Below, piece after piece: positions 2,653 to 55,773 of a DNA stretch of 64,000 bases; position 1 is the stretch's first letter, and every line of letters starts with the position of its first letter. This DNA comes from Bispira polyomma (taxonomy: Eukaryota). A model generated the notes under the pieces. That model did no database searches, was not told the DNA's origin, and saw only the letters and a list, made by a program, of their open reading frames with translations. The translations under genes were made by a program, and so were the position numbers. Location: assembly GCA_965649765.1 (NCBI GenBank), contig OZ287754.1, positions 33,108,001 through 33,172,000 on the forward strand. Direction: 5' to 3'.

Positions 2653-2841
2653 GTGGTCGTATTGATCATGCTCGCCATGGAAACCTGACCAGAAAAGCTT
2701 TGCACGATACCATGGCTATGTCTTATGCATTGCAGAGAATGCTGGAACTGACCAGTGAGGATACTCTAGTAGTGGTCACAGCTGACCACTCTCACGCTTT
2801 TAGACTGCAAGGATATTCAGAGAGTCACACCAATATATTGA
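2653..2841 (+). CDS. Alkaline phosphatase exon with metal ligands (SGRIDHARH...DTLVVVTADHSH)
   Basis: GRIDH and TADHSH AP signatures. Acceptor atacag at 2652, donor gtaagt at 2842, in frame with the previous exon. Confidence 0.93.
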
Positions 2842-2849
2842 GTAAGTGT

Positions 2850-3905
2850 GGGGTTGCTTGCCATGTGGTTAGACATTGGTCTGCTAATTAGAAGGTTCAC
2901 TTTCTAGTCCTGTTTAGGGAGCTGGTTTTGTGATCAGAAGGTTGTCAGTTCCACTCCGGTTTAGAGAACTGTTCTGGTGATCAGAAGGTCGCTGGTTCCA
3001 CTCCAGTTTAGAGAGCTGTTCTGGTGATCAGGAGGGCCACGGTTCCACTCCAGTTTAGCGAGCTGTTCTGGTGATCAGAAGGTCCATGGTTCCACTCTGG
3101 TTTAGAGAGCTGTTCTGGTGATCAGAAGGTCCACAGTTCCACTCCGGTTTAGAGAGCTGTTCTAGTGATCAGAAGGTCCACGGTTCCACTCCAGTTTAGA
3201 GAGCTGTTCTGGTGATCAGAAGGTCCATGGTTCCACTCTGGTTTAGAGAGTTGTTCTGGTGATCAGAAGGTCCACGGTTCCACTCTGGTTTAGAGAGCTG
3301 TTCTGGTGGTCAGAAGGTTCACCGTTCCACTCCAGTTTAGAGAGCTGTTCTGGTGATCAGAAGGTCCACCGTTCCACTCCAGTTTAGAGAGCTGTTCTGG
3401 TGATCAGAAGGTCCACGGTTTCACTCTGGTTTAGAGAGCTGTTCTAGTGGTCAGAAGGTTCATGGTTCCACTCCAGTTTAGAGAGCCGTTCTGGTGATCA
3501 GAAGGTCCACCGTTTCACTCCAGTTTAGAGAGCTGTTCTGGTGATCAGAAGGTCCACGGTTTCACTCTGGTTTAGAGAGCTGTTCTAGTGGTCAGAAGGT
3601 TCATGGTTCCACTCCGGTTTAGAGAGCTGTTCTGGTGATCAGAAGGTCGCAGGTTTCTGTTCGGTTTAGAGAGCTGTTCTGGTGATCAGAGGGTACCCGG
3701 TACCACTCTGGTTTAGACAGATGGTCTTGTGATCTAAAGGTTCTCTACTCTCAGTGGTGCCATAATGATTGATAGGGGATGACACCATTGGGCCATGCCT
3801 ACTAATGAGAACCAATCCTCTGTTGTAGGACTATTCCCTTCTTGAAGAGGATGGTCTAAGAGGATTGAATCATCAATTTGACGCTCTATAAGGGCTTTAA
3901 AATAA
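2850..3905 (+). mobile_element. Probable tRNA-derived SINE with a tandemly amplified head
   Basis: tRNA-like 5' part GGGGTTGC-TTGCCATGTGGTTAGAC, then the 47-bp array, then about 150 bp of unique body/tail. Confidence 0.45.
2911..3755 (+). repeat. 47-bp minisatellite, about 18 copies (AGTTTAGAGAGCTGTTCTGGTGATCAGAAGGTCCACGGTTCCACTCC)
   Basis: gtttag recurs every 47 bp from 2912 to 3711. Confidence 0.97.
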
Positions 3906-4372: not shown

Positions 4373-5102
4373 GTAAGTAAATTTTAGAGCATCTGAGGGG
4401 TTAAACTGCTTCTGATTTTCTTGCTTTGGCTGATTTCACATATTTTGTGGCATATTTCAAAGTTTATTACTTGACATACCAGTATTTTGGAATGTGTGGC
4501 ATATAAAAAATCAGGGCTAGGAAGTTTAATGTACTGGTCAGATTTGATATGTGACCTTCACCTCAAGGTCAAACTGTCACGGAAATATTTTATTAGTGAC
4601 TAGCATTGTTAAATCTACAGATTCACTATATACAGTTTTAACTTTTCAGCTTATAGCAGAAGGTCAACTTAAGTTCAGTAAATTGTAGTTTTAAGGTTGA
4701 CTTAAGGTCCCCTTAATAATTGAACTGAAAATAAGGTTGACTTAAGGTCACCTTAAATTAAATTTTAAAAATGAGAGGTCGTTTTAAGGTGGCCCTAACT
4801 TGAGTTTAAGAGTACGAACTTCTAAGTTTTGAATTCGGTATGCATGTGATGGCACCATGTGGTGACCCTAAATTGAGTTTAAGGTTATTTAGATTTAAAG
4901 CTTTGAAGATAAGATTTGAAGATAAGATTTGAAGATAAGATGTGAAAGAGTACATTATGTACTGATGTGTAAGTTGACCTTATGCCCAAGGACAGTCAGT
5001 ATTCTGTACTGCCCAGTTTTTATTTTCTTGTAACATTAACGTTTGTATATTTTCTTTTAACAGGTGACCTAAAGATGCCAGACCACCAAACACCAGAATT
5101 TC

Positions 5103-6078
5103 CTAGGAGTTGGACTGTTGGGCTTTTCTGGAAGAATCAGCGACCTGGATACCAGTCGGAGCAGAATCTGTTATATATCTCCACACGCAATCAGACGTCC
5201 AGATGCCATAACGTTGAATGTCCTGCACCTTCACGTTATTATTAAACACAAAGGTGGCACCTGAACGCCTGAAAGCATGGAAAGTGAGATTTGCCAGGTG
5301 GGGGTCCAGGAGTAGTAGAACATTTTTCAGGTGTCTTTTCACACGAGTGTCAGTCAAGGCCACCCAGGAACTACCTAGTTTAAACTGAAACAGAGAAACA
5401 TTGGAACCAGAGGGGGTTAATGCTAACACATTTTTAATGCAGTCACAGGACACAGCGTGGAATTAGCTACCACTGGGATAGTTATCAATCTAATGGTGTC
5501 ATTAGATCGCATAGTTTTGGACCATTTAATTAGCAAAGTAAAATAGCCAGGTTTGAAAAGCACATCCCCTCTGGCCAAATGTTTTAAAGGAGCAAAAGCT
5601 GCCAGAGTGTGGGCACAAGTTAGATAGTCTCAGAAAGCTGAAAAAGCTTGTTAAATATACTGCTTTAAAAATTTGCTCCATGTAAGTGCTGTTACACTTG
5701 GCTACTAACGAAGTTAACAGGGGCATGTCAAAAAAACTCTTTAGTTTTGCTGGTATAGGTTTGTTGATAAGCTTGACTATAGTACGAGTTGCGCGGATCT
5801 GTGAAGCAGTCCACATTTATATGAAATAGAATACACTTGGCCTTCACAGCAGACAAGTGGTTTGCAATTTGGGAGGCTGACATGGAGTTATAGTACAGGA
5901 ACTCTAAAAATGATAAAATTCTAAATACATTTACCTGGAACAGAGGCCACTGCATAAAGGCCCAATAGGCCAGAAAGAGCCTGAACATATAGTCATAAGC
6001 CCTAGCTGTCGACACAGCAAAGGCAAAGTGTAACCTCTTGCAAGCTCCACTTGTAAGCAGTGAGTCCATAGGATGCAT
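5103..6078 (-). pseudogene. Tyrosine recombinase ORF of E1, frameshifted
   Basis: ORFs 5728-6078, 5526-5816 and 5103-5453 together give the R...HxxR...W...Y catalytic residues. Confidence 0.88.
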
Positions 6079-6128
6079 ATCTGAAGTACAAACAATTATA
6101 CAAACATGTGTAGCTAATTTATATTGTA

Positions 6129-7425
6129 TTATCTATCCCCAACAGGGAGCCATTTTACTGGTTCAGCCCACTCAGCAAGCCAATACTCATTATTAGTAGT
6201 CTTATCCCAACGCAAGAGCAGATCAGCAATTTTATTTTTTACCACTAATATGTATAATACCCTTATGTCGATATCAAATCTGCTAGCCCACATGTGAATA
6301 TTCTGGGTATAAGCAGCCAGTATTGGATCCTGGGTACGCCCAGTTTCCAATATGCTCACAACTGCTTGATTATCGCACTTAAATAAGACTTTTTTACCCT
6401 GACACACATGGGACCAGAGTTTGAGGGCCACAAGTATGTTTATCATCTCTAAGGATGCTATGTTGTCATGTGACATATGCTCAGGTATGGTGAGTTTGTA
6501 TACTTCATTACCACAGATACCCCCCATCTCAGTGAGGCAAGAGTCCAGCTCCACCTGATTTGTGCGAGAAGAAGCAAACCCCATTTAACTGACTCATAAA
6601 TGTCCTGAACCATTTAAGATCATGGTTGAAATCTTCAGTTATCCGAAACCGATTTTTACCATAATTGTCCCTAAGCAATTGCTGCATGCGATTAAGGAAC
6701 ACACAAGTATATTTTATGCATTTTGCCACATACAGTAAGGAACCTAATAGAGATTGCAGCTCTTTCTTTGTGCAAAACGTTTTGCCTTGCCAAGTAGCAC
6801 AATTTTCTTTAATCTCAGTTGATTTTTCACTGGGAATGGAATTTGTAAAATTTTCTGTGTCTATAAGTATGCCCAGACACACGACCTGTGTACTGGGTGC
6901 CACCAACTTCTTTTTACTGAGAGTTAGGCCAAGTTCGCTTTAAAGGGCTTGCAAACGCTCATAAATAGGTGTAATTTTACTGGGCAGTGATACTGCCAAA
7001 AAAATCGTTGATGTAGTTATGAATACCAAATTCTTTTTTCATTATGTATCTCACTGCATCGGATAAACATTGAAAGATTGTTGAGCCATTCTGATAACCG
7101 AACGGCAAGCTTTTATCTATATAGCACTGGTTTCATTTTAAACCTAGTAAGTCTATGTCTCCTGGGTCAATCGGAACATGACGGAACGTGACGGAGCGCC
7201 CGACTGATGTCAACTTTTAAAATGTGAGACCCTCTACCCAGTTTTGTGACTTCATTGGTAATATTATCAATGGAGAGACAAGATAACAGAAATTCAGTTT
7301 CCAGATAAGAACTCACTGAAGCATCTGCATTTACCGACTGCCCGAGTGGCCAACTCAAGCTATTATTACTCTCCTATTGGTAGAACTCGATTATCCCGGG
7401 TCATCATGGGGGAGAAATAAAGGTT
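6129..7425 (-). pseudogene. RT/RNase H ORF of E1, disrupted
   Basis: ORF fragments 7167-7358, 6529-6906 and 6129-6584; YxDD is changed to YIND. Confidence 0.88.
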
Positions 7426-7844
7426 TGAATTGGGGGGCTCTCAAAAGGGCCTAGAATAGCACCAAAATTGACACTCCTCTTTGAGGTATGTATGTAGGCT
7501 CATGGACTGGAGCTGAAGCAGTATCTGGTTGGAACCAATATTCAAACCTCCATCCAGAGCCGGAGCAGTGACCTCCTCACTTTGGTCGGCACTGCCAGTA
7601 GATCCAGAAGTACTAGCTTCAAGTACACACACCGCCCTCACAGGCCGTTCGTGTTTACCCAGACATTTCGAACACTTGAAAACTGGAGGCATTATAACAT
7701 TTAAAAATTGTTAAACAAGTTAAAAACCCTAAAACCAGTAAAATTTTAAACTCAAAAGTTAAAATTTCCAAGATGTCCGTTTAAAAGTTGTTATTCTGAG
7801 AACATTACTGTGTAAAAGGCTGGAGAATTTAATTTGGGGCCGCC

Positions 7845-19053: not shown

Positions 19054-19236
19054 GATTACCATATATCTGGATTGATGGCAGTCCTACAGAATATACACAC
19101 TGGGCACCAGGAGAACCGGATGAAATGGATGGCACACAGAACTGTGTCCGTATGAACAGCTACACTGGCATGTGGGAAGACTATTTGTGTGATTCATGCA
19201 ACCAGTGGCAAGGTTATATCTGTAAATACAAACTGG
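19054..19236 (+). CDS. C-type lectin exon with sugar-binding motifs (WIDGS...YTHWAPGEPD...NCV...WEDYLC...YICK)
   Basis: Canonical CTLD C-terminal half. Acceptor ttacag at 19053, donor gtaggt at 19237 (phase 1). Confidence 0.92.
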
Positions 19237-19896
19237 GTAGGTATGTGGGGAGACTACCTCTGTGATTCATACAACCAGTGGCAAGGTTATATCTGTAAAT
19301 ACAAACTGGGTAGGTATGTGGGGATACTACCTCTTGATTCTATAGACCAGTGGAATGGTTATATCTGTAAATACAAACTGGGTAGGTATGTAGGGAGACT
19401 ACCTCTTGATCCTATACACCAGTGGAATGGTTATATCTGTAAATACAAACTGGGTAGGTATGTGGGGAGACTACCTCTGTGATTCATACAACCAGTGGCA
19501 TGGCTACATCTGTAAACACAAACTGGGTAGGTATGTTGGGAGACTACCTCTTGATCCTATAGACCAGTGGAATGGTTATATCTGTAAATACAAACTGGGT
19601 AGGTATGTAGGGAGACTACCTCTTGATCCTATACACCAGTGGAATGGTTATATCTGTAAATACAAACTGGGTAGGTATGTGGGAAGACTACCTCTGTGAT
19701 TCATACAACCAGTGGCATGGCTACATCTGTAAACACAAACTGGGTAGGTATGTTGGGAGACTACCTCTGTGATTTTATAGACCAGTGGCAAGGCTACATC
19801 TGTAAATACAAACAGGGTTGGTGTATGGGAAGACTACCTTTGTGATCCATACAACCAGTGGCATATTTATATCTGTAAATACAAATGCAGATAGGC
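19169..19896 (+). repeat. 72/73-bp tandem repeat, 10 copies, spanning the lectin exon 3' end and splice donor
   Basis: acaaac anchor at 19228, 19301, 19373, 19445, 19518, 19590, 19662, 19735, 19808 and 19881. Confidence 0.95.
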
Positions 19897-20313
19897 TAAT
19901 TTATATGAATATTGTTTTGACCAGTCAATGTCCATAGAGAAAGCGAAATCTAGCAGTTGCCCAGTTAACAGAATCAGATATTTTCTAGTGTTATAGATTT
20001 TTATAGCCGAACAATGTTTTCTAGTTAAACTATACTTGTTATTATGGAAATAGGTGTAGGTCTTAATCTACTTAGAGGCACTATCTTGTAACATCAGAAG
20101 AGATAAACAAAACATAGATTCTGGACTGGTTGGGTTGGTATCATTGATGTAATCAGTCTATGTTTGTTGAAGCTTTACAGTGAAATATTCAAATGTTTTA
20201 ATATTGTTTATATGTGCAATCAGTTTATTTCAAAGTAGCCAATTTTATAATTTTTGGTATATGTACCTATTTTGGGTTAAGATTTTTGTTATATGTACCT
20301 ATTTTTGGTGAAG

Positions 20314-22199: not shown

Positions 22200-22220
22200 G
22201 GCTCTTTTCAGGGCCACCCA
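22200..22220 (+). terminator. Histone-type 3' stem-loop after H1 ORF2
   Basis: CCAAAAA-GGCTCT-TTTC-AGGGCC-ACCCA (one U.G pair), 33 nt after the stop codon. Confidence 0.8.
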
Positions 22221-22470: not shown

Positions 22471-22490
22471 TGGTGGCCCTGAAAAGGGCC
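22471..22490 (-). terminator. Histone-type 3' stem-loop after H1 transposase
   Basis: Minus strand AAAA-GGCCCT-TTTC-AGGGCC-ACCA, 28 nt after TAA (22519-22521). Confidence 0.85.
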
Positions 22491-23632: not shown

Positions 23633-24271
23633 CTCTTTCACTTGACTGAACAATTAAAACTGACTGGATACATGGTTCCAGCCCTTTAATATAGTTTCTT
23701 CGGGACAATCTGGAGGTTCCCCCGAGTGTGAATGACCAGGATTGGGTCAGTCGGGGAGGTCGGGTCATAGATCATTGGTTCTTACAAACAATCCGGCAAT
23801 CAATCGCAATGCAAAAAATCAATCAGTCCTTGTGTATGACTTATCTTTTCAATTGTTAACCAATATGAAAATATAATCAGGTGACTCTCGGTTTTTTAAC
23901 ACAGATAGGGCCACAATGGGGTAAAATGCCCACAAATGACTATTATCAAATTATCAAGGCTTGGCTCCAATTGCTTGGCTAACTGAAACAGTACCGTAAA
24001 GAAAATATAATCACAATTTAGGCAAAATATATAAACAATTTACCCTATTTTTACTAAAAAATCCAGCATAAAGGTGATCTCATTACTGAAAAACATACAC
24101 AATCTTCTGTTATTACAATCAAGCCTTGAAAATTAGAGGCATTTAGTATATCAGTATGTTAGGTGAACATTTATTATTAAACCCCTTTTTTATTTTTGTC
24201 AAAGTGATATTTTTATCTGATTACAAATACACCTCTATTTTAAATTCTACTATCCGAACCTGCTGTGAAGT

Positions 24272-24642
24272 AATATAATATGCATTATTACAGGTATACT
24301 ATTTGTGTGTCTTACTGACAGGGTGTGTTCATATAATAAGCATTATTACAGGTGTACTATATGTATGTTTTCCTAACAGGGTGTGTTCATATAATAAGCA
24401 TTATTACAGGTGTACTATATGTGTGTCTTCCTGACAGGGTGTGTTCATATAATAAGCATTATTACAGGTGTATTATATGTGTGTCTTCCTGACAGGGTGT
24501 GTTCATATAATAAGCATTATTACAGGTGTACTATATGTATGTCTTACTGACAGGGTGCTGTAATACAGGTGGTTGGCCTTGTGTTCATATAACAAGCAGT
24601 ATTATTACAGGTATACTATATGTGTGTCTTACTGACAGGGTG
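24272..24642 (+). repeat. 58-bp tandem repeat (6 acceptor copies) spanning the 3' splice site of the last lectin exon
   Basis: acag|ggtg at 24321, 24379, 24437, 24495, 24553 and 24638. Confidence 0.95.
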
Positions 24643-24874
24643 CTGTAATGCTGGTCAGGTGGTTGGCCTTACCTTCCTGTTCCTGGCTCTAACTGGTCTG
24701 ACAGTGGCTACAGTCTACATCATACACAGACTACGGACTGGCCAGGGTTTGCCCTTTATTAGTCAACCTGACGGAGCACTGCCTAGTCAACCTGTTACTG
24801 GTCTGGATAAAACAGCTACACCGGCAACCAACTTCCTCAGTAACCCCAACTATGAGAACATTTCTAATGCTTAG
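24639..24874 (+). CDS. C-type lectin terminal exon: transmembrane helix plus cytoplasmic tail
   Basis: VVGLTFLFLALTGLTVATVYII hydrophobic helix, HRLR stop-transfer, tail ending NPNYENISNA*. In phase with the stalk exon; AATAAA near 24925 and 25153. Confidence 0.82.
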
Positions 24875-29769: not shown

Positions 29770-30591
29770 CAGCCACGCCCGGAGCTGCCAGATCTCCAGT
29801 CATACCACAACTTCCTCAGGATGCCCCTGACGTATTCCAGGAGATGGAGAGGAGGGTGGGGCACAGGATACAGACACAGACCACCTGGTACAGGAAGGCA
29901 CTGCTCCCTGGACTTAAGATAGCTATCACTTTGAAGCATTTGGCTACTGGGGTGTCCTACACATTGCCGCAGTTCGTAGTGGGCAGGTCAACCATAACCA
30001 AGTTTTGCCACAAGTTTGCCATGCCATCATCAACAAGTATCAGGAAGAATTCCTTACATACCCCACCAGCCCTGATGACTGGAAGAAGGTCGAGTCTCTG
30101 TTCCGAAACACATGGAACATTCCTAATGCCCAGGGGCAATAGACAGCAAATACATCTCTATGAGATGCCCGAGGAAAGGAGAGAGTACTTCAACTACAAG
30201 GGGTACCACTCAATCATCATGCTTGTCCTGGTAAATGCAAATTACCATTTTCTGTGGGTCGACATAGGTTTAAGCAACTCATGCTTTGATGCCCAGATTT
30301 TTAACAGATCCGAACTAAAGGAGGAAAATAAAGGATCACTCAATCAACTTCCCCCCCTGAAACCATTAGCCCCATGGTCCTGCAGAATGTGATGAGGACC
30401 GCAGCTATTAACATGGCTAATCCAGCTAGTTCAGAAGATGACCCACCTGTCCACAGATAGCATCACTTGTTGGAGAAAACAACCCACCCAACTGTAGAGA
30501 TACCAGCAGTGTGCCCAAAGAACAGAGGGAGCTACTCATGGAATATTTCACCAATAAGGCGGCAGTGCCATTACAAAACGACCAAGTTTGA
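29770..30591 (+). pseudogene. Harbinger transposase of H2, truncated and frameshifted
   Basis: YHNFLRM, PGLKIAITLKHLATG, YFNYKGYHSIIMLVLVNANYHFLWVDIG; C-terminus RELLMEYFTNKAAVPLQNDQV* (TGA 30589-30591). Confidence 0.9.
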
Positions 30592-30636
30592 GTCTACACC
30601 TCTACACCTGAGCCTGAGTCAAGAATAAACCTAAAA

Positions 30637-30657
30637 GGCCCTTTTCAGGGCCACCTA
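30637..30657 (+). terminator. Histone-type 3' stem-loop after H2 transposase
   Basis: AAAA-GGCCCT-TTTC-AGGGCC-ACCTA, 45 nt after the stop codon. Confidence 0.85.
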
Positions 30658-30729
30658 AAACATCCAAAAAACATTGTCTAAGCTGTTCTTGATTTTTTTT
30701 TTATAAAACTCCTCATGACAAGAAGCATA

Positions 30730-32036
30730 CTCTGAGGAGAGTTGAAGCTGTAGAGGCATTCAGTAGGTCTGATACTCCTTCCACTGACAATGGGTTTGTG
30801 TACTGGTGGCTAGTGTTGACTGCGGCCTGACAGGTGAGCGCTAAATACGTTGTAGCAGTCTTTGTTACAACAGACGTTGTTACTGTTGAGATACAAATGC
30901 GGATGGAGCCATCTGGTATTTGTACCTGGTACTGCTGATGCTGTGGGAACTGTGGCACTGCTTGTGGTGTGACCACCTGGACCTGGATAACGTTCACAAG
31001 GTTGAATGCCTCCCTTCTGAAGTGATTGAAATGTTCATCTGCCAATTTCATCTGCCCTCAGCCTTGGGCTTGCTGGCCTCGTGGAGGAAACCTGGGATGG
31101 TGTCCTGTATCGTGACCAGCCTATCTCTCAGCTCAGTAAACAGTTCCGCCCTGGGGTTCAGGGTTGATCTGGCACAGATTGAAGATTATTTTGAGGTTCT
31201 CCCAGTAGATGCTACCAGCAAGAAAGACTCCATCTTTGTTTCAGTTCCCTGGTCTGTGTCTGACTGGGATATTGAATGCACCTCCCTATCCCCAGCTGTG
31301 TCAGTCTGATACTTCACATTATGTGGTGGTTCAACATTTAAGAATGATCAACAAAATGAGCCCGACTTTGAAATTGGAGCATTCGGGGCAAAAAACTCAA
31401 TTACTTAAATATTTTGGGCAGAAAAATATAAGTGTGGGGCGACCTTCCCGATCGAACTGATTGTGTCCCATTTTGACACCAACCAAGATCAACCTTAAAG
31501 TCCGTAATAAAACTGACCTGACCTCCCCGATCCCGATGTTTGATTAGGATCAAACTTATTGACAATACGATCTGACGTATTGCCCTAGGTCGACCGTGTC
31601 GGCAATAGGATCTGACAGATCTGTACCCCCTTCTCACACAATCGTACTTCTAATAATCAAGGTCAGGACTGCTACGGCAAAATACCAGCAAAATGGTTTT
31701 ATATTCTTCCACACCAGTGTTAGGACAGGCTTGGAGTGTGATAAGACCTAACAGACAGAACGTAATGGCAATCTGATTGAACTTATTTGGCGATAACAAC
31801 CTTCCCGTTCTTAGAGTCAGAAGAGACCACCACATTCGCCCCGTTTTTGTCCCCGACCTATATGGACACACCCCGGACCTCAAAAATCGGGAAGGTTGGG
31901 GAGCAAATCGGCATAGTGGAACCAGCGTTCCCTCCTTCACCATCACCAGGGTCTGGGAAGGCTGTGTTTCTGGGATGAAATCCTGCACGTCTACATGCTC
32001 AATCCTCCCCTTCTTACTCTTTCTTTTTGGTGCCAT
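30730..32036 (-). pseudogene. Harbinger accessory ORF2 of H2, split by a nested insertion, 3' end deleted
   Basis: Homologous to H1 ORF2 at the N-terminus and in two C-terminal blocks. Confidence 0.65.
31320..31930. mobile_element. Nested non-autonomous Harbinger-like element inside H2 ORF2
   Basis: Right end AATCGGCATAGTGGAACCAGCGTT resembles the H2 TIR. Subterminal inverted similarity (cccga.ttt.ga...tcgggg.caaaaac). Left end poorly defined. Confidence 0.55.
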
Positions 32037-35000
32037 AATTATTCACAATTGTATCTTAAACATTTTTATTTTAATATTTTACGCTCAAAAAACAACGAAG
32101 TAATATTCCCAATAATAATCTCTATCTGTAGAACTGTTGATAGTTGTGAACTCTCCAAGATACTGTACCTGGATGAATAAAGATCTCTGTCAAGGCCCAC
32201 ATATATATTATCAGGACCCCTCCCAAAATGCGTGCTGACCAATAAGATTTCGCGCCCAAGTCTTCTTTTGACACCCGAGCTATCCTTTCACTCCCCCGAC
32301 TTATCTTTTGTTTCCCCCAGAGTCATCTTTTCAACTGGGGGAATACAAAGGATCTATTGATCTTTGACAAATGACACGATAAGTCGGGGGGAATAAGTCG
32401 GATGATTTGCCCAACAAATTACGGGAAGATTGGAAAGAGAGGTCTTGAGATGGTAACAAAAAGTTATTAGTGGGTTATTACTGGCCACAATTGGCCCTGA
32501 GTTATCGGCCTTGCCATCCATATTCGCACTCGCGCGCAGCGGCTTTAAACATGTTTGAAAACCTCTGATTCAAAAAGATAAATTGTTGGATGCCTCCGAC
32601 CTCCCCGATAATTGCACAGATCTTATAATCAGGACAGTTGGGGGCTATGATTGGCATAGTGGAACAGGGGTTTTATATGTAATAATATACGACTGTAGAA
32701 TATCATTGATGGTGAGACATTCTACATGACACTGTCAGAGGTAGTGGGGTCTTAAAGACACTGAACAAACCACTGTAAAAGTGTGAAATAAACCTGCAAA
32801 AACATTTCACATTCTTCACAACTTCTCACTTGAAATCCTGCAATTATTACAAGAAGGGGATTAAAACTTGTGAAGTAAGAGATTTGAGGAGACTTGTGTC
32901 AATAGAAAGGTGTTGTGATTCTGTGGTTTGCGTTAAGATACCCTTTACATTGTATATGTATGCTCCCACATTATTGCAGCTTATAGTATACCTATGTCAA
33001 ATCTTATTTTAGCTTTGACTTTACCATTGATTTAGCTCTTTTAAATTTATGGGATAGATTTTCCGAAATACAAGTACACAATGACTTACATATTTCCCTT
33101 GACTTTGAGCCTGCGTTTACTTTGACCCTGGAATTCTCAATTGAAGTAAAAAATAAGATAAAACATGTATGATCAAATATACAGTGCTAGGGCAATTCTA
33201 CAATTTAACAAGCAAATTATGTACGTATTTATGCACAAGATCTCCCATACATGTGGACCCTGGATCATTCTTTTGTGGGCAATGTTTCAATGTGAGTGGT
33301 TCTTCATAAACACCACAATGCACAGTGAAATCTAACAGGTGTTTCAGGTACAAACTAATCACCCCTTTGTTACATACACAGAGAAGTGGCCGACTTAAAT
33401 AGGAAACTTTAAAAAACAATCTAGAGTTGATTTTTTATTTTGCACTCAAGAAGCTTGGCCGATAATTCTTTAAACTATCCTTCGGGGTTTAAACCTAAAT
33501 TGCTGTAATACAATATAATGTAAAAACTAATAACATCAGAGTTATCTGCTGGGTTTCTCTTCAAATAATACTAGTGGACTATAGCTCTATGATTTCTATA
33601 TCCCATATTTTTTGTCCACTTCACGTTAAGAAAAAACTTCTAAAACTGTTGTTGAACACTGTTATGCGTGTGAAGAGACTTAAACCTATAGGGAGGACTT
33701 ATATTATTGAGAGATTTAATGCCCATATAGAGGTTTAAAGCTGACTGGCACCATGAAGGAGGGGCTTCAGTCTGCTGTTGACACATACTACACTTTAAAT
33801 AGCATTGGCATCCACTACCACCAGCCCCCAGGCGAAAGTGTGTGCATGTTTTAGCCTGGGTTAGACCATTAACTGTGATATTTGCACATTTGCCATCTAA
33901 AACATCGCCACCTACAATTTACCAAGCCATTACAAACCTTAACAACATGCTTCGTCTTGATCTTTAAATTTTGAAAATGTACTAATTTTAAATAGCAAGT
34001 CAATTACTTAGAGTTGTATTATAGAGAGACTCAGACTCTATGGATACTTTATACTTGATGTCGTTGTATATGTGGGGAGTATCAGATGAGTGGTAGATGC
34101 TCACTTGCTTACTGTAATACTGCTCCTTACATAATGCACTCTATATATGGTAACATATATATGGTAATATTTTAAATTCGAGCTACTCAATACGCTGCCT
34201 TTATTGTGGCAACTGGTGCTCATCTCTATTTTTCATGTTGCTAAAGATCAATGACCTAGCTAGAAGATATTAAGATTTGACTGAAAACTAATATTATAAT
34301 GGTAATGTACCACTGGTGATAGATGATCAAATATGGATTAGACTTTATTGTTAAATCGGCCAGAAAATAGTGAACCCTGTCAGGTAAGTAGGACGGTCGT
34401 GGTCAAAATATATTGAATTCTTGGTAAACCTGTCCTATTTGTCGGAAGTAACAAGATAGATTTTGATATACTGGTCATACGAATGATGTATTTTAGAATT
34501 AATGTATTTTTGTCAAACCTTAGAAGCAGTGTTAAATTGTCAAGAAAAACAAAAATATTGCTGACATAAAAATGTTTTAAATGGGTTTATGTGTGTATAA
34601 ATTGTTTAAATATGCAAATATGCAAAGCCAAATTGCTTTAATGAAGAATATTTGACTGTGTTAGTTTTAAGTATGCAATTAATTCAATTGTGCCCTGTGC
34701 ATGACAATGTACAGGTGAATTCCTTTCAAAGTGAGACACTCGGTGTATTAACAAAGGTCACATACTACATTTAGACTATGTTTAGTAGATTTCACCTGGT
34801 CTTTAGACTTACCACTTTACCATATTCAGCTACATCAGGGCCTTGTGTCACATACAGACTGAAAGGTCTACGAGTCATTCCTATACCTAAACCTAAGTAC
34901 CACATTCATAGATTCCATTGTTACTGGACATTACCTAGGCGATCACCATTTTGTGTAATAGAAATTTTAGCAAACTATTACAATCTGAAGTATAAGTTCA

Positions 35001-37665
35001 CAAAGGTACATTAACTCAAGCTTGATAAGTTGAAGTACACATGTTTGGTAAACATATTTATAAGTCTTTAATTTAACAGTTTTCACAATAATTTAAAGCT
35101 GATCCTAAATGACATGATCCATTCAAGCCGTACCTTTAAAAACAATCAGTAATGCTTAACTTTGCAATAAGAAATGTAAGACTTTGTTCACCTGCTTTTA
35201 TTGTGTGTTAGCAAGTTTTAACATTTTTACTGATAACTCTTAAAAGTTAAAATATTCAATGCTCAGTGTTTTCATAATTTACTTTTGATTTGTATATGTC
35301 CACATATATGATGATCGTAGGGGTTTTTAGAGTACTTGATCAAAATATGTTTATTGTATTCAGAGCACTAATTAACTCTGTCCTGACTGTAACAGTCAAC
35401 TTCCGGAGTTACTGCCATTCCCCTAACTGAAGAGAGAGGCTTGAGGATGACTGTTTATCAACGTCCTGAAGGATTTTTAGCCTGCCACTGGGAATAGGAC
35501 CCAGTGACAGTGGACCGACATTTTAAGTGGTCATCTGTGCTACTAGGTAAATGCGGTAAGCCGAAAACCTCCTTGCACCTAAAACATGACCACCACAATA
35601 ACAAAACATCAAATTTATACTTTGGCCTTTGACCTGGCTTTTGAACCTACCTTTATTTTTAAGGTAAACTTAGCCAAGAAGAAGTATTAGATTTTAGACT
35701 GAGAACAGGCCTTACATGAAACCGCCTCTTGACGTTTCTTAGGACTTACAATATATAACAATTATATCTTTGAGTACAAAGAAATCATTCAAAACTAAAG
35801 TCATTCTAAAAACTGCATTAATTTAGTAGGTCTCATGTACAAGAACCCGTGCTCAATTTAACAAAGAAGATTGAAAGCTACATTTAGTTACTTTAGTACT
35901 ATGAGGAAGTTCTTTAAGAAAAGTGTGAGCATGCCCAGACAAGAGGTTGTGCTGATCTTAGTAAACTGATTTATAAACTAGAGTAAAAGAGGTAAATATA
36001 GCTGGAATAATGGTTTACCTGTTTCCACGACTTTATTCCATTTCTTTTTACTGTTCACAATTTTCTCTTAAAATAAAATAATAACCTTTATATTTGTGAT
36101 ATATGTTATCACTAGGTTTAGTTTTTTTCCTGTACAAGACTAATAAATTAATTTGTTGTTCTAATTCAGTGTAAGTTTCAAACTGTACTGTAACATATAG
36201 CCTAATGTGTGATGACCCTTTGTGTCAAGTTGACGCAATAAACCCCTGGTAATCAAATAGTGGCAGAGTATTCAGCACATATCTATGCTGTCCAAGTCTG
36301 TGTTAATGGGTTATGTTAGAACATGCACAGAGGATTCTTAAAGACATTTAAGAACAGAGACAACCAAATATATGTCATACATCACATTCTCATGTTGGTC
36401 ATGCAGGAAAAATGAACCCTGACAGATACCACTTTGATTTCTAGGAATAAACAATGAAGTTAAATATATAATATTAAAAAAGAGTCTGTCATCTGTTATA
36501 TCTTAGAAAATAACAGTTAAAAGTAAGCACTATATTTAAACGCCGTTATTAAAAAGGAATCCTTTTAATAACACGAGCCCTCTCTTGTTTTGTGTGGAGG
36601 TGTACAATAAGACGTAGACACTGGATTCGAGAAATGGTTGACTCACTACTAATGTATCCCCCCGCCATTATATCGCCAATGTCCCAGCTCAGGAATACAA
36701 CATTGTCTTTACATCTTTAATTGTATTGCGACATTTTACCACACAAATGAAGTGTCAATCAAATTTGGTGAGTGACTGAATCTTGTAATTTTGTAATTAT
36801 TTGTGTTATTTATATTTATTCAGACTGTTTTACCTTATATATGATAACCCTGGAGGATTTTGATTCAAAATATTATTTTAGATGAAATTGACAAGCCTTA
36901 ACAAAAAGGATGAGCCTAACTGCCTCCATTGTGACTACAAGCACCCTTCCCCTTTGACCCTGTATTATATACCCTGGCTATATTCACACAACCTCCAGTC
37001 TTCTATACAACTCCACACATTGAAATGTCACCGTGTTCATCATGTATAATCATCTGTCTGATTCCACACAGTACTCCATGCTGAGTTCTCACTTGACATT
37101 AACCATACTTTGATATCATCTATACATTGTTCTTCTCCTAAAGTATAAGAGTTCACATCCATGGAATAAGTTTGCATTAAGCTAAATATTGTACAGTTTA
37201 TACATTACACATTCTTTATATCATGTATGTTAAAACATTAATTTAAAATAGTACGCATATTAAGGGTTATCATAACTCGTATATCTTTAATAATCATTGA
37301 AGGCATGCACTGTTGTCAAGTACAAGCTGTGGTTCATACAAGTAAGAACTTTATTGCTTTATTAACTTTAGGGCTTGTAAAAGCATTGCACATGTCAATG
37401 TTTCCACGTCACTAGTATTTTATTTATTCATTTTGTCAAGTATTAATGTTATGACATAAACTCATTAAACCATGTAACATACACAGAGTAAAACTAGAAT
37501 CACAGATCCCTCAAGGTAGGAAATTAAAGAGTTGAATCCTCTAAGTGAAAGCTGAAGAAATACCTCTAATCAAGCAGGATTTCCACTGAACAGGATATCA
37601 AATAAAATGTTTTTTTGTGTGACTAGAGGGCTTATCAAGCAACTTCTACTTATAAGAACCCTCCC

Positions 37666-38370
37666 ACCAAGTAGTGACCTATAACTAATTGGTGTACAAT
37701 TGTGTACCAAGTAGTGATCTATAAGCATTTGTCTACAATTGTGTACCAAGTAGTGATATATAACTAATTGGTGTACAATTGTGTACCAAGTAGTGATCTA
37801 TAACCAATTTGTGTACAATTGTGTACCAAGTAGTGATCTATAACCAATTTGTGTACAATTGTGTACCAAGTAGTGATCTATACCCAATTGGTGTACAATT
37901 GTGTACCAAGTAGTGATCTATAACCAATTTGTGTACAATTGTGTACCAAGTAGTGATGTATAACCAATTTGTGTACAATTGTGTACCAAGTGGTGATCTA
38001 TAACCAATTTGTGTACAATTGTGTACCAGGTAGTGATCTATAACCAATTGGTGTACAATTGTGTACCAAGTAGTGACCAATAACCAATTTGTGTACGATT
38101 GTGTAACAGGTAGTGATCTATAACCAATTTGTGTACAGTTGTGTACCAAGTAGTGACCAATAACCAATATGTGTACAATTGTGTACCAGGTAGTGATCTA
38201 TAACCAATTTGTGTACAATTGTGTACTAAGTCGTGATCTATAACCAATTTGTGTACGGTTGTGTACCAAGTAGTGACCACTAACCAATTTGTGTACAATT
38301 GTGTACCAGGAAGTGACCTATAACCAATTGGTGTACAGTTGTGTACCAAGTAGTGATCTATAACCAATTT
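37666..38370. repeat. 40-bp minisatellite, about 17.5 copies (CCAAGTAGTGATCTATAACCAATTTGTGTACAATTGTGTA)
   Basis: Direct periodicity of 40. Confidence 0.97.
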
Positions 38371-41300
38371 ATTCTCCCTTGATAAAAGTTAACAATATTC
38401 TTATCAACTGTATTCTGCACAGCTTTCGTAATTACTGCAAAACTCCACAGCTCATAATTAAAAAGCGAATGAACATATCTTGTAGTTCAAACAACTTTAT
38501 TTATCAGGTAAATATGTTTTGCCCCATGCTTGTTAAAATGTTAACGATTTAGTGGGATATTTGGGCCATATCTGGACACAGTTTACTATGTTTTGGTTTC
38601 CTAAATAACAAATGTCTGAAGAACAAAGTCCTATTGTATGTTCATGATATCATAGGTTGAGAATTCCTCCTTGAATTCAAGGTGGTTGTGACCACATACT
38701 TGTGAAAAAATTTTGACTAAGAGTGGTGTATCTTTTACCTCAGCATTCTGTTCACAGAGATAATTGTGTGCACATCACAACTGATTAACACAAATACTAG
38801 TAAAAAGACTTTGATTTGTCAAAAACTGTCATGAGATTTTAAGGATACAAAAAGTGCAATTACTTCCATGGACAAATTTAAGTAGGTAATCATTTTACGA
38901 AGCCTTAACTATGTGTCAGTAGAGGACGTTTTTCTTTGAAGTCACATTCTTGAAATATAGATTCAAAATTAGTACTACTTTGTTTTAATAACCATTAATA
39001 ACAAGAATATTCTAAATAATTGTCTGAGGTCATGACATCCCAGCGTTTCCATCATATTTTGTCATTAGGTGGCCAATTATATTATATCTTCAATATATGC
39101 ATCATATCAAACTTCATTTGTGTTAGTGAAATGTTATGGGTAGTGTTTGAGACAGGCCAATACTGACACGTGTGGACATAACTGTTCACTTGTTTGTACA
39201 TAAAGGCACATTTACATGTTAATACACATCTCTGTCTCATCAGTAGATAGGTATTAGTCGACCCGCTTACTGGCAATGAAACCGAAACCTTGTATTTGAA
39301 TTTGATTAGCAAACATAATTTCCTCCAAATTTTTTTAAATTTTATTTATCTTTAAAAGGAAAATGCCAATAATGCTCATAAATACTAGTAATAATCTTTA
39401 GTAATAATGCATTTTTTAAGATGTCACTTTTAAAGTAGTTCTAAGACATAGCAGTCAACTATTGCAATAGATAGAATGGCATGCAGTGACTTCTGATACA
39501 CATGTCACCAGACTTTCACTCACCCCTCTTAAATGGATATCTATTCTACAGAAGTCTATGTCATCTCCATATAGTACACATTTCGGTATTGTGTAAATAG
39601 GTATGACATTTATCCACTACATTGTAAGATTGTAAAGTATGGAGAAAAAATATTTGATTTTAAAAGACACCCTAGATATACACTATTGATGGAAAATTAT
39701 GTATAATTGGCCCACATTTTAACTGTTAATCTAATCTAATCAATTCCGTAATGGTGCTTAATTTCCGTATTAGCAGAATCTAAGGCACAAAAAAGAGATC
39801 TCTTACAGATGTTGCAAATGCATTTCCTTCAAACTTTTTATACTGTTGGCCCATTTGTTAGGATTTGAAGGTAAAGCAGACCAGGTTCAGTGGGTTATTC
39901 TATGTTTTGTCAGAATAATTATTACAGTATTAAGCATTACACACTATTTCCACACTAGGGTTGTTTCCAAGTGGCACCCTATTCAGGGGGTGTTGTTTTG
40001 ATATCTAAATAATAATTGAACCATAAAATACTTAATTATATTGAAAATGTGTGCGGGAATATTATTTATAGTCTTATATAATTGTCCTAATAACCAATTT
40101 AAACAGAAATAGATCAAAGTCACGTCAATAAAAAAAAAATAGTTTTTATAATTCTCTGACTTTGCAATAGCATTGTCAATGTGTTTTTTTATCTACTTTT
40201 TAAGTTGAATAAAAAGTAACAAATCAGCATAACATTGAATACTCTGTCTCACATTTTAAGATCAAAATCATTGGTGTTGAAAGGTCCCGAGTGTTCTTTT
40301 TAAATGGTCCCAGTTTTGAGATGGCCTTTTACTGTTTAAACCATGCCCCATTGTATGTCTCACATTATTAAATGCAGAACATTTGATTTGTTATTACCTA
40401 CAATACATATTCATACATATTGTTATTTACAAGAATATTAAATGATATTTCCCAATGGAGAGTTTATCTCAAGTGTATCTAGCTTTTGTTCACTATATGG
40501 TAACAAAGAATGCTCTGTGTGATCAACTGATACAAAATGTGAATTCCTTAAAAGCCACTCTCACCGCATGGAACTCTTTTATTAAGTGAGTAAACAGTAC
40601 TTTCGACCTAATAGATCTCCTCAGTAACTACAAAGAAATCAGGCCTTAGCAGACGTCAAGAAACTGTGTAAAACACCACACTTCTGTCAGATAAATTTAC
40701 TTTACCGTAGATTTTAGTCTTCAATACAATAATGAAGTCTTGAGAATTGTACTTCTTTGAATGCACATCTGAATCATGTAATGTCCCCTTACTGTTCTTG
40801 GTTTGCACATACAAAATCTGGTTTATTTAGCTTAGTAGTTCCTATTCTATCAACGAAAGGTCCCGTTCCTTGTAAGATTACTTTAACCTCAATTAAACAA
40901 AGTTAAACCCCTTTAAGTCAAACCTCAAGGACTAACCTAAATACCTCTACTTAACCAGTTGCCAGGCTAGATTATATAATGAAAGGCCTTCGTATGACTA
41001 ACATTTTCTTTACATAATTATTTTTTCAAATCAAATGAGATTATATGCCCAAATTGAGCCTCAATGCAGGCTATAATGGATTGCTTGCGTCTGAGTACAT
41101 CTGCACACTTGGTTTAACCTGTTTAACTTATTGACATCTTCATTGTAAGTCTTTTAAGACCTTGTAAAAAGCTGATGGTATTCATATAAAACAAAGATAA
41201 CATTGTTAGCCAAGTATTTAGTTGGTCTCAAAAGAAATTTCCAAAAAGTAGTTTTTTCCATTGCACTTATTCATGTATTACAGTGTTTTATCGACACTTT

Positions 41301-42461: not shown

Positions 42462-44881
42462 TTAGCAGGCATTAAGGGGTGCTTCGTTCTAGTCAAATCC
42501 TCCCACTGACAGTGACCACAGAGACACACGTAGATGTGTGTCATGTATTCAGTACTCTGACTGTGGAAGAACAAACAGAGCATATGGAATTCTGATTAAA
42601 CACTTCTTAATGTTCAATGACTTATGAGGGGTGTTACATCAGACAATACAAAAAGAGGGCACTATTAAAGCCCTAGGTGCACTTAACTGTGAATCATGTC
42701 ATCTTTCCATTAAGTAGAGAGGGCAGAAGCTGGAATGTCGTCATTTCCTGAATTGTTACTGTTTTATCCAAAGGGTGCTTTTAGCATGGACTGCTCTCTG
42801 ACTTGTGTGATGTTTGCTCAGAACACATCTCCACTCAAAACTCAACATAGCAAGCAAAACATCGGAATTTATACTCTCAAGATCTCTTCTCAAGATCAAT
42901 TCCGCTGGTAGAGATTTGGTTGGTTTTGTAAGTTTTTTTATCAAATGGACTCTCTAAATAAAGTGGATAATTGCTTTTTGTATTTTGTTGAAGTGTTACA
43001 GGGGTAAACATTGGTGGATTTTTGTTACATACATACTTAACGTTACATGCGTGTATGTAAGTGTGGGCTGACTGATCTGATATAAACTTCTATATAAAAG
43101 ATAAAAACCACAAGTTAAGGATTGGCTTGGAAGAAAACTACACGGCCAGGTATTTGCTTGGAGTGTTGTGTGTGCTATTTTAATGGACTAAGATCTTAGA
43201 AATTTTTTATATACAGAAACAATCAAAAAGCCTATGATAAAGATCGTCTGTCACAGAAAGTGTGCTTCACTGAACTGAATAAATATATAATTGAGTGTCA
43301 CCAACAGGATTTACAGCCATATATTGTAAAAAGGAAGGTTAAATGTTCAAACATTACATGACAAATATCTGGATTATACAGTGAAGTTTTAAAGAGAATG
43401 AAACTTTTAGTAACTCGATAGCATGTGAAACTTAAATATTGAAAGAACTTGGTGAACTATTTTTGAAATCAAAGTGTAAAGTGTCTGTACTTTATGACTG
43501 TGGTAACCAAGATTAGGGGAACTTCTAGTCCTGGAATTTTTTTCTCAAACTAGTAAGTATTTTAACAAGTTAGCAAGGTATAACATGTATTTTAAACATT
43601 CAAAATTAATTATGGTAATTGTGGTGTCGTAAGACAGATTTTATATGCTTAGCCCCTGGGTAATTGAATCAAAACACCAAAGTCATACTTCTTCTTTGGC
43701 ATGTAAACTTGCATTCAGCTCCTACATGACACATATCTGTTTACATATACATAAAACATCTGGTAGGTTTCAATTGCTCTTTTAAATCTGTTATTGCTGT
43801 TGTATGCAGGCTGGTGTGTGAGGTTAATGGTTGATACATCACTGAGTTCTGAATAAGTAGGACTTGTATATGGGGTTACACCCTCTCAGTGTATTATATT
43901 AATGCACGTTATATAAAAGCCGTACCCTGTTCATTAAACTAGTGGTTATGGAGGAGTATCAGGGGAAAACAAAGTCAACTCATTGAAGCCCTTTAAATCG
44001 AGTATCAAGGAACTCAGAAAATACCTCTACTAAAGTCCTGGTCCCACCGGTCGTCACGTTAGAAGTCGTTTGAAAAAAATTAATTTGCGTAGGTTTTGCA
44101 AGAACTGACAAACAATACATAAGCATGCATAACCTGGCGTGAGAGATGACATGCAAGAAATTAATAATTTCAAACCGTTTGAAATTTGGACACGCAAACC
44201 ACTTAAGATTGATACATGGTTTAACCTAATATTTGCGAGAGCTTTGAGAGAGGTGGTGTAGTATAACGGCTAGAGGCATCACAATGTGTGAATGACGTGG
44301 TTTAACGTAATTAAACATACTTAAATGTAAATAATGTCCTTCAATGTGTATTGGCGTACTCGTACATGTCATACTTACTTTGACGTTAACTTATGCATCC
44401 CCTGCGAGACTTTACAACTTTTGACGTACCAATACATGAATTTTAACGTCTGTTGACGCCTTTAACATGGAGAAAATGTCCCTAATTAGAGCTTTACATG
44501 ACGGGTCTCATCAACTATTTACACGGCCCTTGCGTGACTAACCTAACCTAACATACATTCGGTGGGACAAGGGCATAAGCAGCATTTCTATGTAACAGGG
44601 GCTATTAAAAAAATACTATATGCACATGAATGAAATGGACTAAACATAATTCTACTTCAAGGGGTTTGACTTTATATCTTAATACGGTTACACTCTGGTA
44701 TGTCTAAATTTAAAAGACTACTAATAAAACCTGGTTTGGTTAAGTGTAAAATTAGCAACATGCTTGTCATACACAGAAGGTAGACATTTGATTGAAGTAA
44801 AGTTTGCTGTACCCAGTAAAGTAGACTTGACTCTCCAGGTTTAAAGTGACACAAATGTGCTCTGTATTTTTACAATAACCC

Positions 44882-45726
44882 GTAAGTGCCTGACAGAGCC
44901 ATTTTAAGGGTAGTAACAGTCTGGGTGTCTGTTCAGTATATCATTAGCAAATGCCTGACAGAGCTTTTTTAAGGGTAGTAGTAGTCTGGGTGTCTGTTAA
45001 GTATGTCACCAGTAAGTGCCTGACATAGCCTTTTTAATGGTAGTAAAAGTCTGGGGAATCTGTTAAGTATATCACTAGTAAGTGCCTGATAGAACCTTTT
45101 TAAGGGTAGTAACAGTCTGGGAGTCTGTTAAGTATATCACCAGTAAGTGCCTGACAGAACCTTTTTAAGGGTAGTAACAGTGTAGGGTGTCTGTTAAGTA
45201 TATCATCAGCAAGTGCCTGACAGAGCCTTTTTAAGGGTAGTAATAGTCTGAGTGTCTGTTAAGTATATTATCAGTAAGTGCCTGACAGAACCTTTTTAAG
45301 GGTAGTGACAGTCAGGGAAATCTGTTAAGTATATCACCAGTAAGTGCCTGACATAGCCTTTTTAATGGTAGTAAAAGTCTGGGGAATCTGTTAAGTATAT
45401 CACTAGTAAGTGCCTGATAGAACCTTTTTAAGGGTAGTAACAGTCTGAGTGTCTGTTAAGTATATTATCAGTAAGTGCCTGACAGAACCTTTTTAAGGGT
45501 AGTGACAGTCAGGGAAATATGTTAAGTATATCACCAGTAAGTGCCTGACATAGCCTTTTTAATGGTAGTAACAGTCTGGGGAATCTGTTAAGTATATCAC
45601 CAGTAAGTGCCTGACAGAGCCTTTTTAAGGGTAGTAACAGTCTGGGGTGTCTGTTAAGTGCATAACCAATAAGAGCCTGACAGAGCCTTTATAAGGGTAG
45701 TAACAGTCTGGGGAATCTGTTAAGTA
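44882..45726. repeat. 65/66-bp minisatellite, about 13 copies
   Basis: GTAAGTGCCTGACAGAGCCTTTTTAAGGGTAGTAACAGTCTGGGGAATCTGTTAAGTATATCACCA repeated. Confidence 0.97.
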
Positions 45727-46912
45727 CAGTCTTTGATACACACAGGTTGGGTTACACAAATATAGAGGGAGTGAGGCATTCTGTGTTTGAATTATTTAGT
45801 TATGCGTAAGTCAAGGGAATTAAGAGAAGCATAACTCTGCCCTGTATATATAGAATTATAAGCTCTTCGTGAGCCACTGGAGCAGTGAGCAGTTCTTTTA
45901 CTGTACAGACTTCTCTCACATACACCTAGTGTTATTGTAGGACAGCCAGCAGTCATTATTAATGTATACAGTCAAAAGAGGGCTTCAGTAAATGCATGAA
46001 TTAGATAGTATAATTACTTTATTCTGTGTGTTATGTTTTTATATCTATATTGTGAACTCATGTCACGAGGACGCTAGAATAGAGTGGGGTAAGGCATTCA
46101 AAATAAACATCTGTAATATCCCACTCGATACTTAGTCGTTACAATAAATAGATACAATTAATGCAGCAAATTAAGTTAAACACTGCTACAAACAGGATTG
46201 GGGTATGACATTTTAAATTAACGGCTAATGTTACTTATAATTACTATGGTACATTTTTGAAAAGTGGCAAATGTTCAACTCTTTACTGTACATGTATTTG
46301 TGTATGTTGTAATTGTGTGTCAGATTAATCAGTTTTGTCATTTTAACATGATTTATGCACTGATTGTCTCTCCACACAGACATATGGCCTCTTGATCTAA
46401 TCTATAAACAACAATGGACTTGATTCAAATCATTGTACACATGTTAAACTGTGCTGTTATAGCAGTAAAACACCAAACATCAGTGAAGACGTTTGCTTCT
46501 GATGTAAAGTTTAGTGGACTCATGTAGGAGTTGTCTCTTTACAAAGGAATACAACCATGGAGCTGAAATCTCAGGTTATCCTGTAAACCAGGAATACAAA
46601 ATAGGTCAGATGATCAATTAGTGGGTTTGTAATAGAAAACCTTGATACTGTGCATTGTCTCTAAAACATCATCTAGCTTCAGGAGGACATCAGCTAGCTG
46701 TGATGGTATAGTTAGATATGTGAGGATTTACTTAGTGTTTGTGAGTCTACAGTGAATAAGATTTACTAATTACTAGTCTATGTAAGATATACAGTTATAA
46801 AGATTTCCCCACATAGGAAAATTAGAGTTATAAATGTTTTCTAATCATGCAGTACCTATGTTTGTAGGTTTATTGAAGTGACCAGTACACTATACTACAA
46901 ACACTAGTCACC

Positions 46913-54605: not shown

Positions 54606-54958
54606 ATACACGTTTAGAAAGAACATAACACATGTACAATGCAATTATTCATTTAAGTCAACAGTAAATACATCATTGCACACTCAGTGATAACAACATA
54701 AATTATATCACCACTGTATTTTAAAAGAGTAGATTTAATCGTTGAGCTATGGTGTACGTAATATCCTCATGTATAATGAGGACTATCTGTGGTTTTTTTT
54801 ATATGTTTTTGACTTTTGGGAAAATAAATGCTGATTTTGGTATAATTCGTTTTTTAACTTTATGGCTTCAATGGTAGTTCAATTCTACATACTGGTATGT
54901 TCTATACGTACGGTGTGTTCTATACAGACATCATTAAACATGTGTGATTATGTTGTAG

Positions 54959-55773
54959 GAGCCAATGTTCATGACCTCCAGGATGAGGGAGTCTCCAGCC
55001 TATACTCGGCCTGTCACTTTGGTCATGCAGATGTCGCTCATGTCTTACTATCCCGTGGGGCGGAAATCAATACTGGAAACAAAGATGGCTTGACGCCACT
55101 GCACTTAGCCAGCGCTGACAGCAATATCAAATTGATGAAAGTCTTGATTGATAACAGAGCAGATGTAAATAGAAGAACCAAGAATGGTGAGACAGCCTTA
55201 ATGTCTGCTATCAACACCAACCAGGTGGATGCCATTAAATATCTTCTTAGATCTGGAGCTTACAAACATTCTACCAAAGAGGACTACGGATGGGGTCCAC
55301 TAAATCTCGCTTGTAGCTATGGCAATGTAGCCACAGTGAAGGCACTCCTTGATGAAGGGTGTGATATCAATGAACTACTCAGCAGTGGCTCACCTCTACA
55401 CGTGGCTGCAGGTTCAGGTCATGTAGAGGTAGTCAAGTTCTTACTGCAGTGTGGTGCAGGACTTGACACCCAAGATGAATATGGATGTTCACCACTACAT
55501 TACGCCTCTCAGCATGGTCATTCGTACGTTGTGGAGGCTTTAGTGCATGTGGGGGCAAACATCAATCTACAGCAAAATGAGGGGGCCACTAGCCTCTATC
55601 TGGCAGTGTACTTTGAGAAATGTGAGGTGGTATCGATGTTATTAACATTTGGGGCAGATATAAGGCTTTCCGACAAATCAGGGTGTTCACCTATTCAAAT
55701 TGCTCATCAAAAACAGAACTGGTATATTCTGCAGTTGTTGCAGAATGCCAAGAATATGTTCACTGTGGTATAG
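54959..55773 (+). CDS. Ankyrin-repeat protein terminal exon (8 repeats); joined CDS 1467 nt = 488 aa, about 13 ANK repeats
   Basis: Repeated G.TPLH.A...G...VV..LL..GA motifs; acceptor ttgtag at 54958; stop TAG. Confidence 0.93.

Follow-up and report, generated by a model that had tools for sequence, protein, structure and literature searches.

A histone-type 3′-end signal behind the transposase gene of a fossil Harbinger copy in Bispira polyomma, and its recurrence among related Harbingers

Behind the transposase gene of a dead Harbinger element in Bispira polyomma stands a perfect histone stem-loop, identical in all 16 nucleotides to one in a second, diverged copy nearby. Replication-dependent histone mRNAs have been described as the only cellular mRNAs known to lack poly(A) (PMC4604434), and the locus raises the question of whether the hairpin is a chance insertion or a trait with which a transposon once finished its mRNAs. 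We refer to the two copies as H1 and H2 (the histone of that name is written out as linker histone H1) and to the whole stretch of DNA analysed, 64,000 nt, as the window. The first-pass annotation had read the stem-loop as a selected family trait, not a chance insertion. That conclusion is supported, mostly by relatives of the element elsewhere, whereas the comparison of H1 with H2 is a weak argument when taken alone.

The H2 copy spans about 29,772–32,670 (Table 1). Its transposase groups among Harbinger transposases in the tree, and a Pfam search gives a DDE_Tnp_4 match at 30,186–30,368 (E 5.7e-07). The broken partner gene, ORF2, is homologous to that of the genomic copy L009, where the MADF match is weak (E 0.006); a domain search of H2’s own ORF2 piece gave no MADF match. 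The internal deletion of about 235 bp in the transposase recurs in L009 and in a copy on C13, and is thus older than the H2 insertion, so that H2 was mobilised as a non-autonomous derivative. It is a dead member of this internally deleted sublineage, with no selection acting on it today. Its family is old, since the nearest genomic copies found are only 77–86% identical. PIF/Harbinger elements have terminal inverted repeats of 25–50 bp and duplicate a 3-bp target site; no repeat pair was found for H2, which has one probable end and lacks the other, its transposase side being truncated. Its ORF2-side hairpin, reported lost in a deletion at about 30,730, is indeed missing from that junction onward in alignments with L009 and L003, and L003 has the missing H2-type module together with the reciprocal deletion. 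The reciprocal deletions of H2 and L003 both have their breakpoint directly behind one and the same AAGCATAC motif, where the shared module ends; facing each other, the two modules make up a long inverted repeat, which may be deletion-prone. The repeat inserted in the H2 ORF2 has about 5000 candidates in the genome, and its end carries a 13-mer also found in the probable H2 terminus (32,653–32,665), so the repeat may itself be a non-autonomous Harbinger.

Table 1. Coordinates in the window of the H2 element, its 3′-end signal and the H1 hairpins.
Feature	Position	Strand	Remarks
H2 Harbinger transposase remnant	29,772–30,591	+	5′-truncated; 7 frameshifts; ~235-bp internal deletion near 30,374; frameshift-aware alignment
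H2 transposase stop codon (TGA)	30,589–30,591	+	
Stop-to-hairpin spacer	30,592–30,631	+	8-nt tandem duplication at 30,593–30,608; AATAAA at 30,624–30,629
26-nt histone-type element	30,632–30,657	+	A-rich 5′ flank; 6-bp stem with UUUC loop at 30,637–30,652, then ACCUA; Rfam RF00032
Block like the histone downstream element	30,665–30,684	+	purine core from +14 after the stem
Further conserved block	30,685–30,729	+	common to both arms and both subfamilies
Deletion junction	30,729/30,730	.	inter-gene spacer, ORF2-side hairpin module and ORF2 3′ end gone; alignments with L009 and L003
Broken ORF2 (MADF/Myb-like partner gene)	30,730–32,036	−	homologous to ORF2 of L009 and L003
Abundant repeat interrupting H2 ORF2	~31,303–31,924		
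Probable ORF2-side element end	32,561–32,670	.	common to L003, 79% over 112 nt
H1 transposase-side hairpin	22,475–22,490	−	16-mer identical to H2; 11-nt deletion before the downstream element
H1 ORF2-side hairpin	22,200–22,215	+	downstream element intact

The signal behind the H2 transposase closely resembles the 3′ end of metazoan replication-dependent histone mRNAs (RF00032; SLBP, U7 snRNP, CPSF73). As the first-pass annotation had described, the perfect 16-mer begins 45 nt after the TGA and is followed by ACCTA; the Rfam Histone3 model (RF00032) matches 30,632–30,677 with 39.6 bits (cut-off 34, E 4e-08). The 6-bp stem, 4-nt loop, G2–C pair, top U6–A pair, loop U1 and U3 and ACC tail are all present, the A-rich flank and the purine-rich downstream element at host spacing are likewise shared, and the H2 29-mer folds as the predicted histone hairpin in 81% of the ensemble. 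The 26-nt element lies 40 nt after the stop, and 23–32 nt after it in five relatives; in histone genes this distance is 25–60 nt (bioRxiv 10.64898/2026.10.14.759114). The difference lies in what precedes the signal, which there follows histone genes and here follows transposase and MADF genes, with processing predicted from DNA; by the known histone pathway, cleavage would fall after position 30,657. Allowing three mismatches, four hairpin-like matches occur in the window against 0.10 expected by chance. A near-match at 7,436–7,451 was set aside as chance, having a broken stem, no tail and no Rfam match.

Just upstream of the stem stands an AATAAA, at the position given in the first-pass annotation, which had offered two readings of it. 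The genomic copies decide between them: 35 of 38 read AACAAA at this flank, which rules out an alternative poly(A) signal. The AATAAA of H2 is a sporadic C>T change and incidental.

The transposase-side 16-mers of H1 and H2 are identical, as claimed, and the two H1 hairpins score 39.1 and 36.8 bits with Rfam Histone3. The two copies are not near-identical either, sharing 72% of their DNA against 80–89% inside the subfamilies. They are diverged, but less so than had been implied, the C-terminal difference being partly frameshift decay (5 and 7 frameshifts in the H1 and H2 transposases). The spacers between stop and stem do differ in sequence and length (47% identity), although 8 nt of the extra length of H2 are a private duplication. 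What fails is the view of H2 as a copy independent of H1. The two belong to one clade (support 100/99) as sister subfamilies, which rules out independent acquisitions; as dead copies of one clade they represent one inheritance, and the pair alone is weak evidence. A perfect 16-mer would survive decay of about 9% with a chance of about 22%, so the perfection of H2’s own hairpin is unremarkable, and, H2 being a dead copy of a deleted sublineage, this perfection is inheritance.

Comparing H1-type with H2-type sequences, three copies each, gives 88% identity in the 26-nt element, 67% in the last 60 coding nucleotides, 47% in the spacer, 68% in the downstream element and 60% in the next 58 nt. This profile suggests that the hairpin was constrained in the master lineages, in a small sample where sequence beyond the signal is also common to both types: some 60 nt past the histone signal are shared by both subfamilies and both arms. 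A Harbinger on a contig from another animal sample, L069b, is sister to the H1/H2 clade (100/96) and has the module on ORF2 only, with a downstream element of the host-genome type. The module therefore predates the H1/H2 split, and from L069b it may have started on ORF2; beyond this greater age of the trait, the H2 copy adds little. The L069 contig holds two hairpin-bearing Harbingers (1,641–1,686 and near 10,441), whose downstream elements are like those of the B. polyomma genome, and one Harbinger without a hairpin.

We compared the module with the histone genes of the host itself, in an assembly of 1.035 Gb on 14 large contigs. True histone genes for H2A, H2B and H4 (L008, L057) and a linker histone H1 array (from L010 onwards) were recovered. 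A purine core stands at +14 after the stem in the linker histone H1, H2A, H2B and H4 genes and at the Harbinger ends alike, with a similar tail behind it; 26–31 of 37 nt are identical between Harbinger and host histone ends, with linker histone H1 mostly the best match. Beyond the downstream element, the Harbinger module shows weak similarity to the host H2A flank. Genome-wide, exact 22-mers number 80 against 0 in the control, and exact matches to the hairpin followed by AAAAACA number 136 against 0. The linker measures exactly 13 nt in 96 of the 100 matches listed, with 8–16 nt allowed, and varies in sequence. The host encodes SLBP (PF15247 over the cut-off, two exons on C5). An Rfam search for the host U7 gene gave eight matches, all below the cut-off, and identified no such gene; pattern searches of the genome returned 29 matches against 17 in the control, and then none. 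Among the U7 candidates, L061–L064 proved to be a dispersed repeat, and L067–L068 look like splice acceptors. The linker histone H1 genes, about 60 of them, form a tandem array with a 1727-bp period (G000:C4:54707086-54812449, L010–L030), separate from the core histone genes and with a stem-loop at each gene.

On the sequence comparisons, those with the relatives below included, we think it probable that active ancestors of the element made histone-type, SLBP/U7-processed mRNAs, and that H2 is a fossil of such a Harbinger lineage. Following the known pathway, SLBP would have bound the hairpin (bioRxiv 10.64898/2026.10.14.759114), U7 snRNP would have paired with the downstream element, and CPSF73 would have cut about 5 nt past the stem, leaving an mRNA without poly(A). 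Active ancestors would have ended both mRNAs, those of the transposase and of its MADF partner, in this fashion. More speculatively, transposase supply might have been linked to S phase or to maternally stored mRNA, times when elements of the cut-and-paste type increase in number; in S phase, a copy is added when an element leaves replicated DNA and inserts where replication is still to come (PMC4270019). The two convergent transcripts might also have ended before overlapping into dsRNA, a similarly weak suggestion.

To place the trait among relatives, we used 78 related transposase loci from other samples whose flanks were long enough, among them metagenome contigs, in which assembly errors are possible in single cases. 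Named relatives are HARBI1-like proteins of molluscs, echinoderms, brachiopods, crustaceans and fish. Within 150 nt downstream of the stop, 14 of the 78 loci have the hairpin, the expectation being about 0.001 for each 150 nt. A looser scan adds L115, as well as L092, whose flank is too short for the 78-locus count; about 15 of the 78 carry the hairpin, 18–110 nt after the stop, and seven of the hairpin-bearing relatives reach the Rfam cut-off. A sequence scan blind to pairing is bimodal, with 13 loci at 0–3 mismatches and none at 4–5, and all six pairs are kept in 13 of 13. Four of the six stem pairs show two-sided changes, while G2–C and the top U6–A are invariant; the sequences were partly picked for pairing, which inflates the percentage paired. 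The L098 element combines an uninterrupted transposase with a 533-aa MADF ORF (MADF over the cut-off), and each of the two ORFs ends in the signal. Its relative L161, from the sea urchin Diadema setosum, bears the module solely on the side of ORF2; between the two elements the module is 85–92% alike, against 62–65% for the coding DNA.

The named relatives examined in Strongylocentrotus, Lingula, Pecten, Holothuria and Thalassophryne have no hairpin, and no relatives of the element were found on viral contigs. Neither the absence of intron-like inserts (0/15 hairpin-positive against 9/62 hairpin-negative loci, p 0.19) nor a depletion of poly(A) signals in hairpin-positive loci (p 0.24) reached significance. 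Animal-type Harbinger transposases also appear in bacterial MAG records (L154–L156; Sedimenticola, Kluyvera), probably through host contamination.

These relatives also bear on what the hairpin did. It could have been an SLBP-binding site only, serving translation, oocyte storage or decay within a longer, polyadenylated mRNA, with U7 cleavage minor or absent. SLBP does bind the long poly(A) isoform of H2AFX (PMC4604434), several hairpins lie 67–110 nt from the stop, and hairpins stand in tandem, four in L084 (L084:1530-1630) and four after the L098 ORF2 (L098:2550-2660), with a downstream element at the last only. We nevertheless regard this account as unlikely: a purine-rich element follows most hairpins at +12 to +16, its sequence differing by lineage, and would be superfluous for SLBP binding alone; in the present genome it matches the element of the host histone genes; and the upstream AATAAA is not conserved.

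The distribution of the hairpin over the Harbinger tree is patchy. On a 96-row tree, which left out rows L001g and L005g and those under 190 aa, the trait needs 13–15 changes, at least 10 of them forced by well-supported branches, in counts that mix gain and loss. A single origin of all hairpin-bearing Harbingers is rejected (p-AU 1e-66, with negatives chosen as sisters of positives). The first-pass annotation had proposed dating the acquisition on a transposase tree; on the Harbinger tree the trait is no single acquisition, the hairpin having been gained or lost repeatedly. About 80% of the related Harbingers are without it, including L076 and L150, 90–92% identical sisters of the four-hairpin L084; the hairpin is therefore dispensable. 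The 3′ region of these two sisters is AU-rich and unrelated to that of L084 from about 15 nt after the stop.

Such a pattern might suggest neutral capture, in which recombination brought in a piece of histone 3′ flank that was then duplicated onto the other arm and passed on unused. The patchiness and the abrupt replacement of the 3′ UTR between L084 and its sisters fit this account, as do the weak H2A-flank similarity and the shared sequence past the signal. It is nonetheless quite unlikely in our judgement, as it would take at least 8–10 separate changes, each leaving a sense-oriented hairpin 18–110 nt after a stop, against a background of two matches in 275 kb, each located next to another Harbinger gene of L069; moreover, the module is conserved better than the coding DNA.

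As to the reading that histone-type processing was used by active elements, the chances seem evenly balanced, on the sequences at hand, for its wider form, in which animal Harbingers would have repeatedly captured the host histone 3′-end signal and tuned it to each host’s U7, making them a source of replication-coupled, non-histone mRNAs finished by SLBP and U7.

We think it very improbable that the module is a small repeat in its own right, or a marker of insertions beside histone genes, unrelated to Harbinger genes: about half of the genome matches listed do form one linker class (ACCCAAATGTTTC) with no parent ORF tied to it, but eight of the nine best dispersed Rfam matches lie at the ends of Harbinger genes (the remaining one at the histone gene H2A), in 38 of the 39 top H2-like copies, in a ranking that favours longer matches, the alignment runs through the hairpin from the transposase end, and the hairpins of H1 and L098 are internal and face each other. 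Elsewhere in the genome, the 30 best DDE_Tnp_4 loci, mostly of other clades, lack a hairpin behind the stop, and, counting against histone-type processing, none of the roughly 100 most intact Harbinger ORFs adjoins an exact hairpin among the matches listed, as compared by eye in partial lists.

Both parts of the arrangement are known, and the combination appears undescribed. PIF/Harbinger elements of the Harbinger clade with a Myb/MADF partner gene have the same DDE_Tnp_4 transposase and convergent MADF-type ORF2; they differ in that the literature searched reports none with a histone-type 3′ end, and about 80% of the sampled relatives have ordinary, hairpin-less 3′ regions. ENE triple-helix elements in transposon RNAs are another 3′ motif of mobile elements for stability or processing; they protect a poly(A) tail and work without a host snRNP. 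The likeness is that of a mobile element with an RNA 3′ motif, which here would replace poly(A) by way of a host pathway thought to be histone-only. A full-text search found no report of histone-type 3′ ends on transposons, within a scope that most subscription papers and the Repbase notes lie outside. Transposons are absent from a 2026 survey of histone 3′ processing (bioRxiv 10.64898/2026.10.14.759114), and the stem-loop is absent from a Harbinger survey.

If the proposed reading is true, a transposon would be a natural exception to the histone-only SLBP/U7 route without poly(A), and a cut-and-paste element would have a direct way to time its enzyme to S phase (PMC4270019). Its transcripts would furthermore escape RNA-seq based on poly(A). 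The question can be put to a direct test in near-identical sister elements, some bearing the signal and some lacking it (L084 against L076/L150; L098 against L161).

The rest of the window contains a retroelement remnant with an RNase H-like domain on the minus strand (5,100–6,900) and a 303-aa ankyrin-repeat ORF on the plus strand (54,862–55,773), adjoining an 87-bp tandem repeat. Further tandem repeats lie at 2,808–3,859 (47-bp period), 19,166–19,924 (~72 bp), 24,266–24,655 (58 bp), 37,607–38,466 (40 bp) and 44,862–45,775 (~66 bp).
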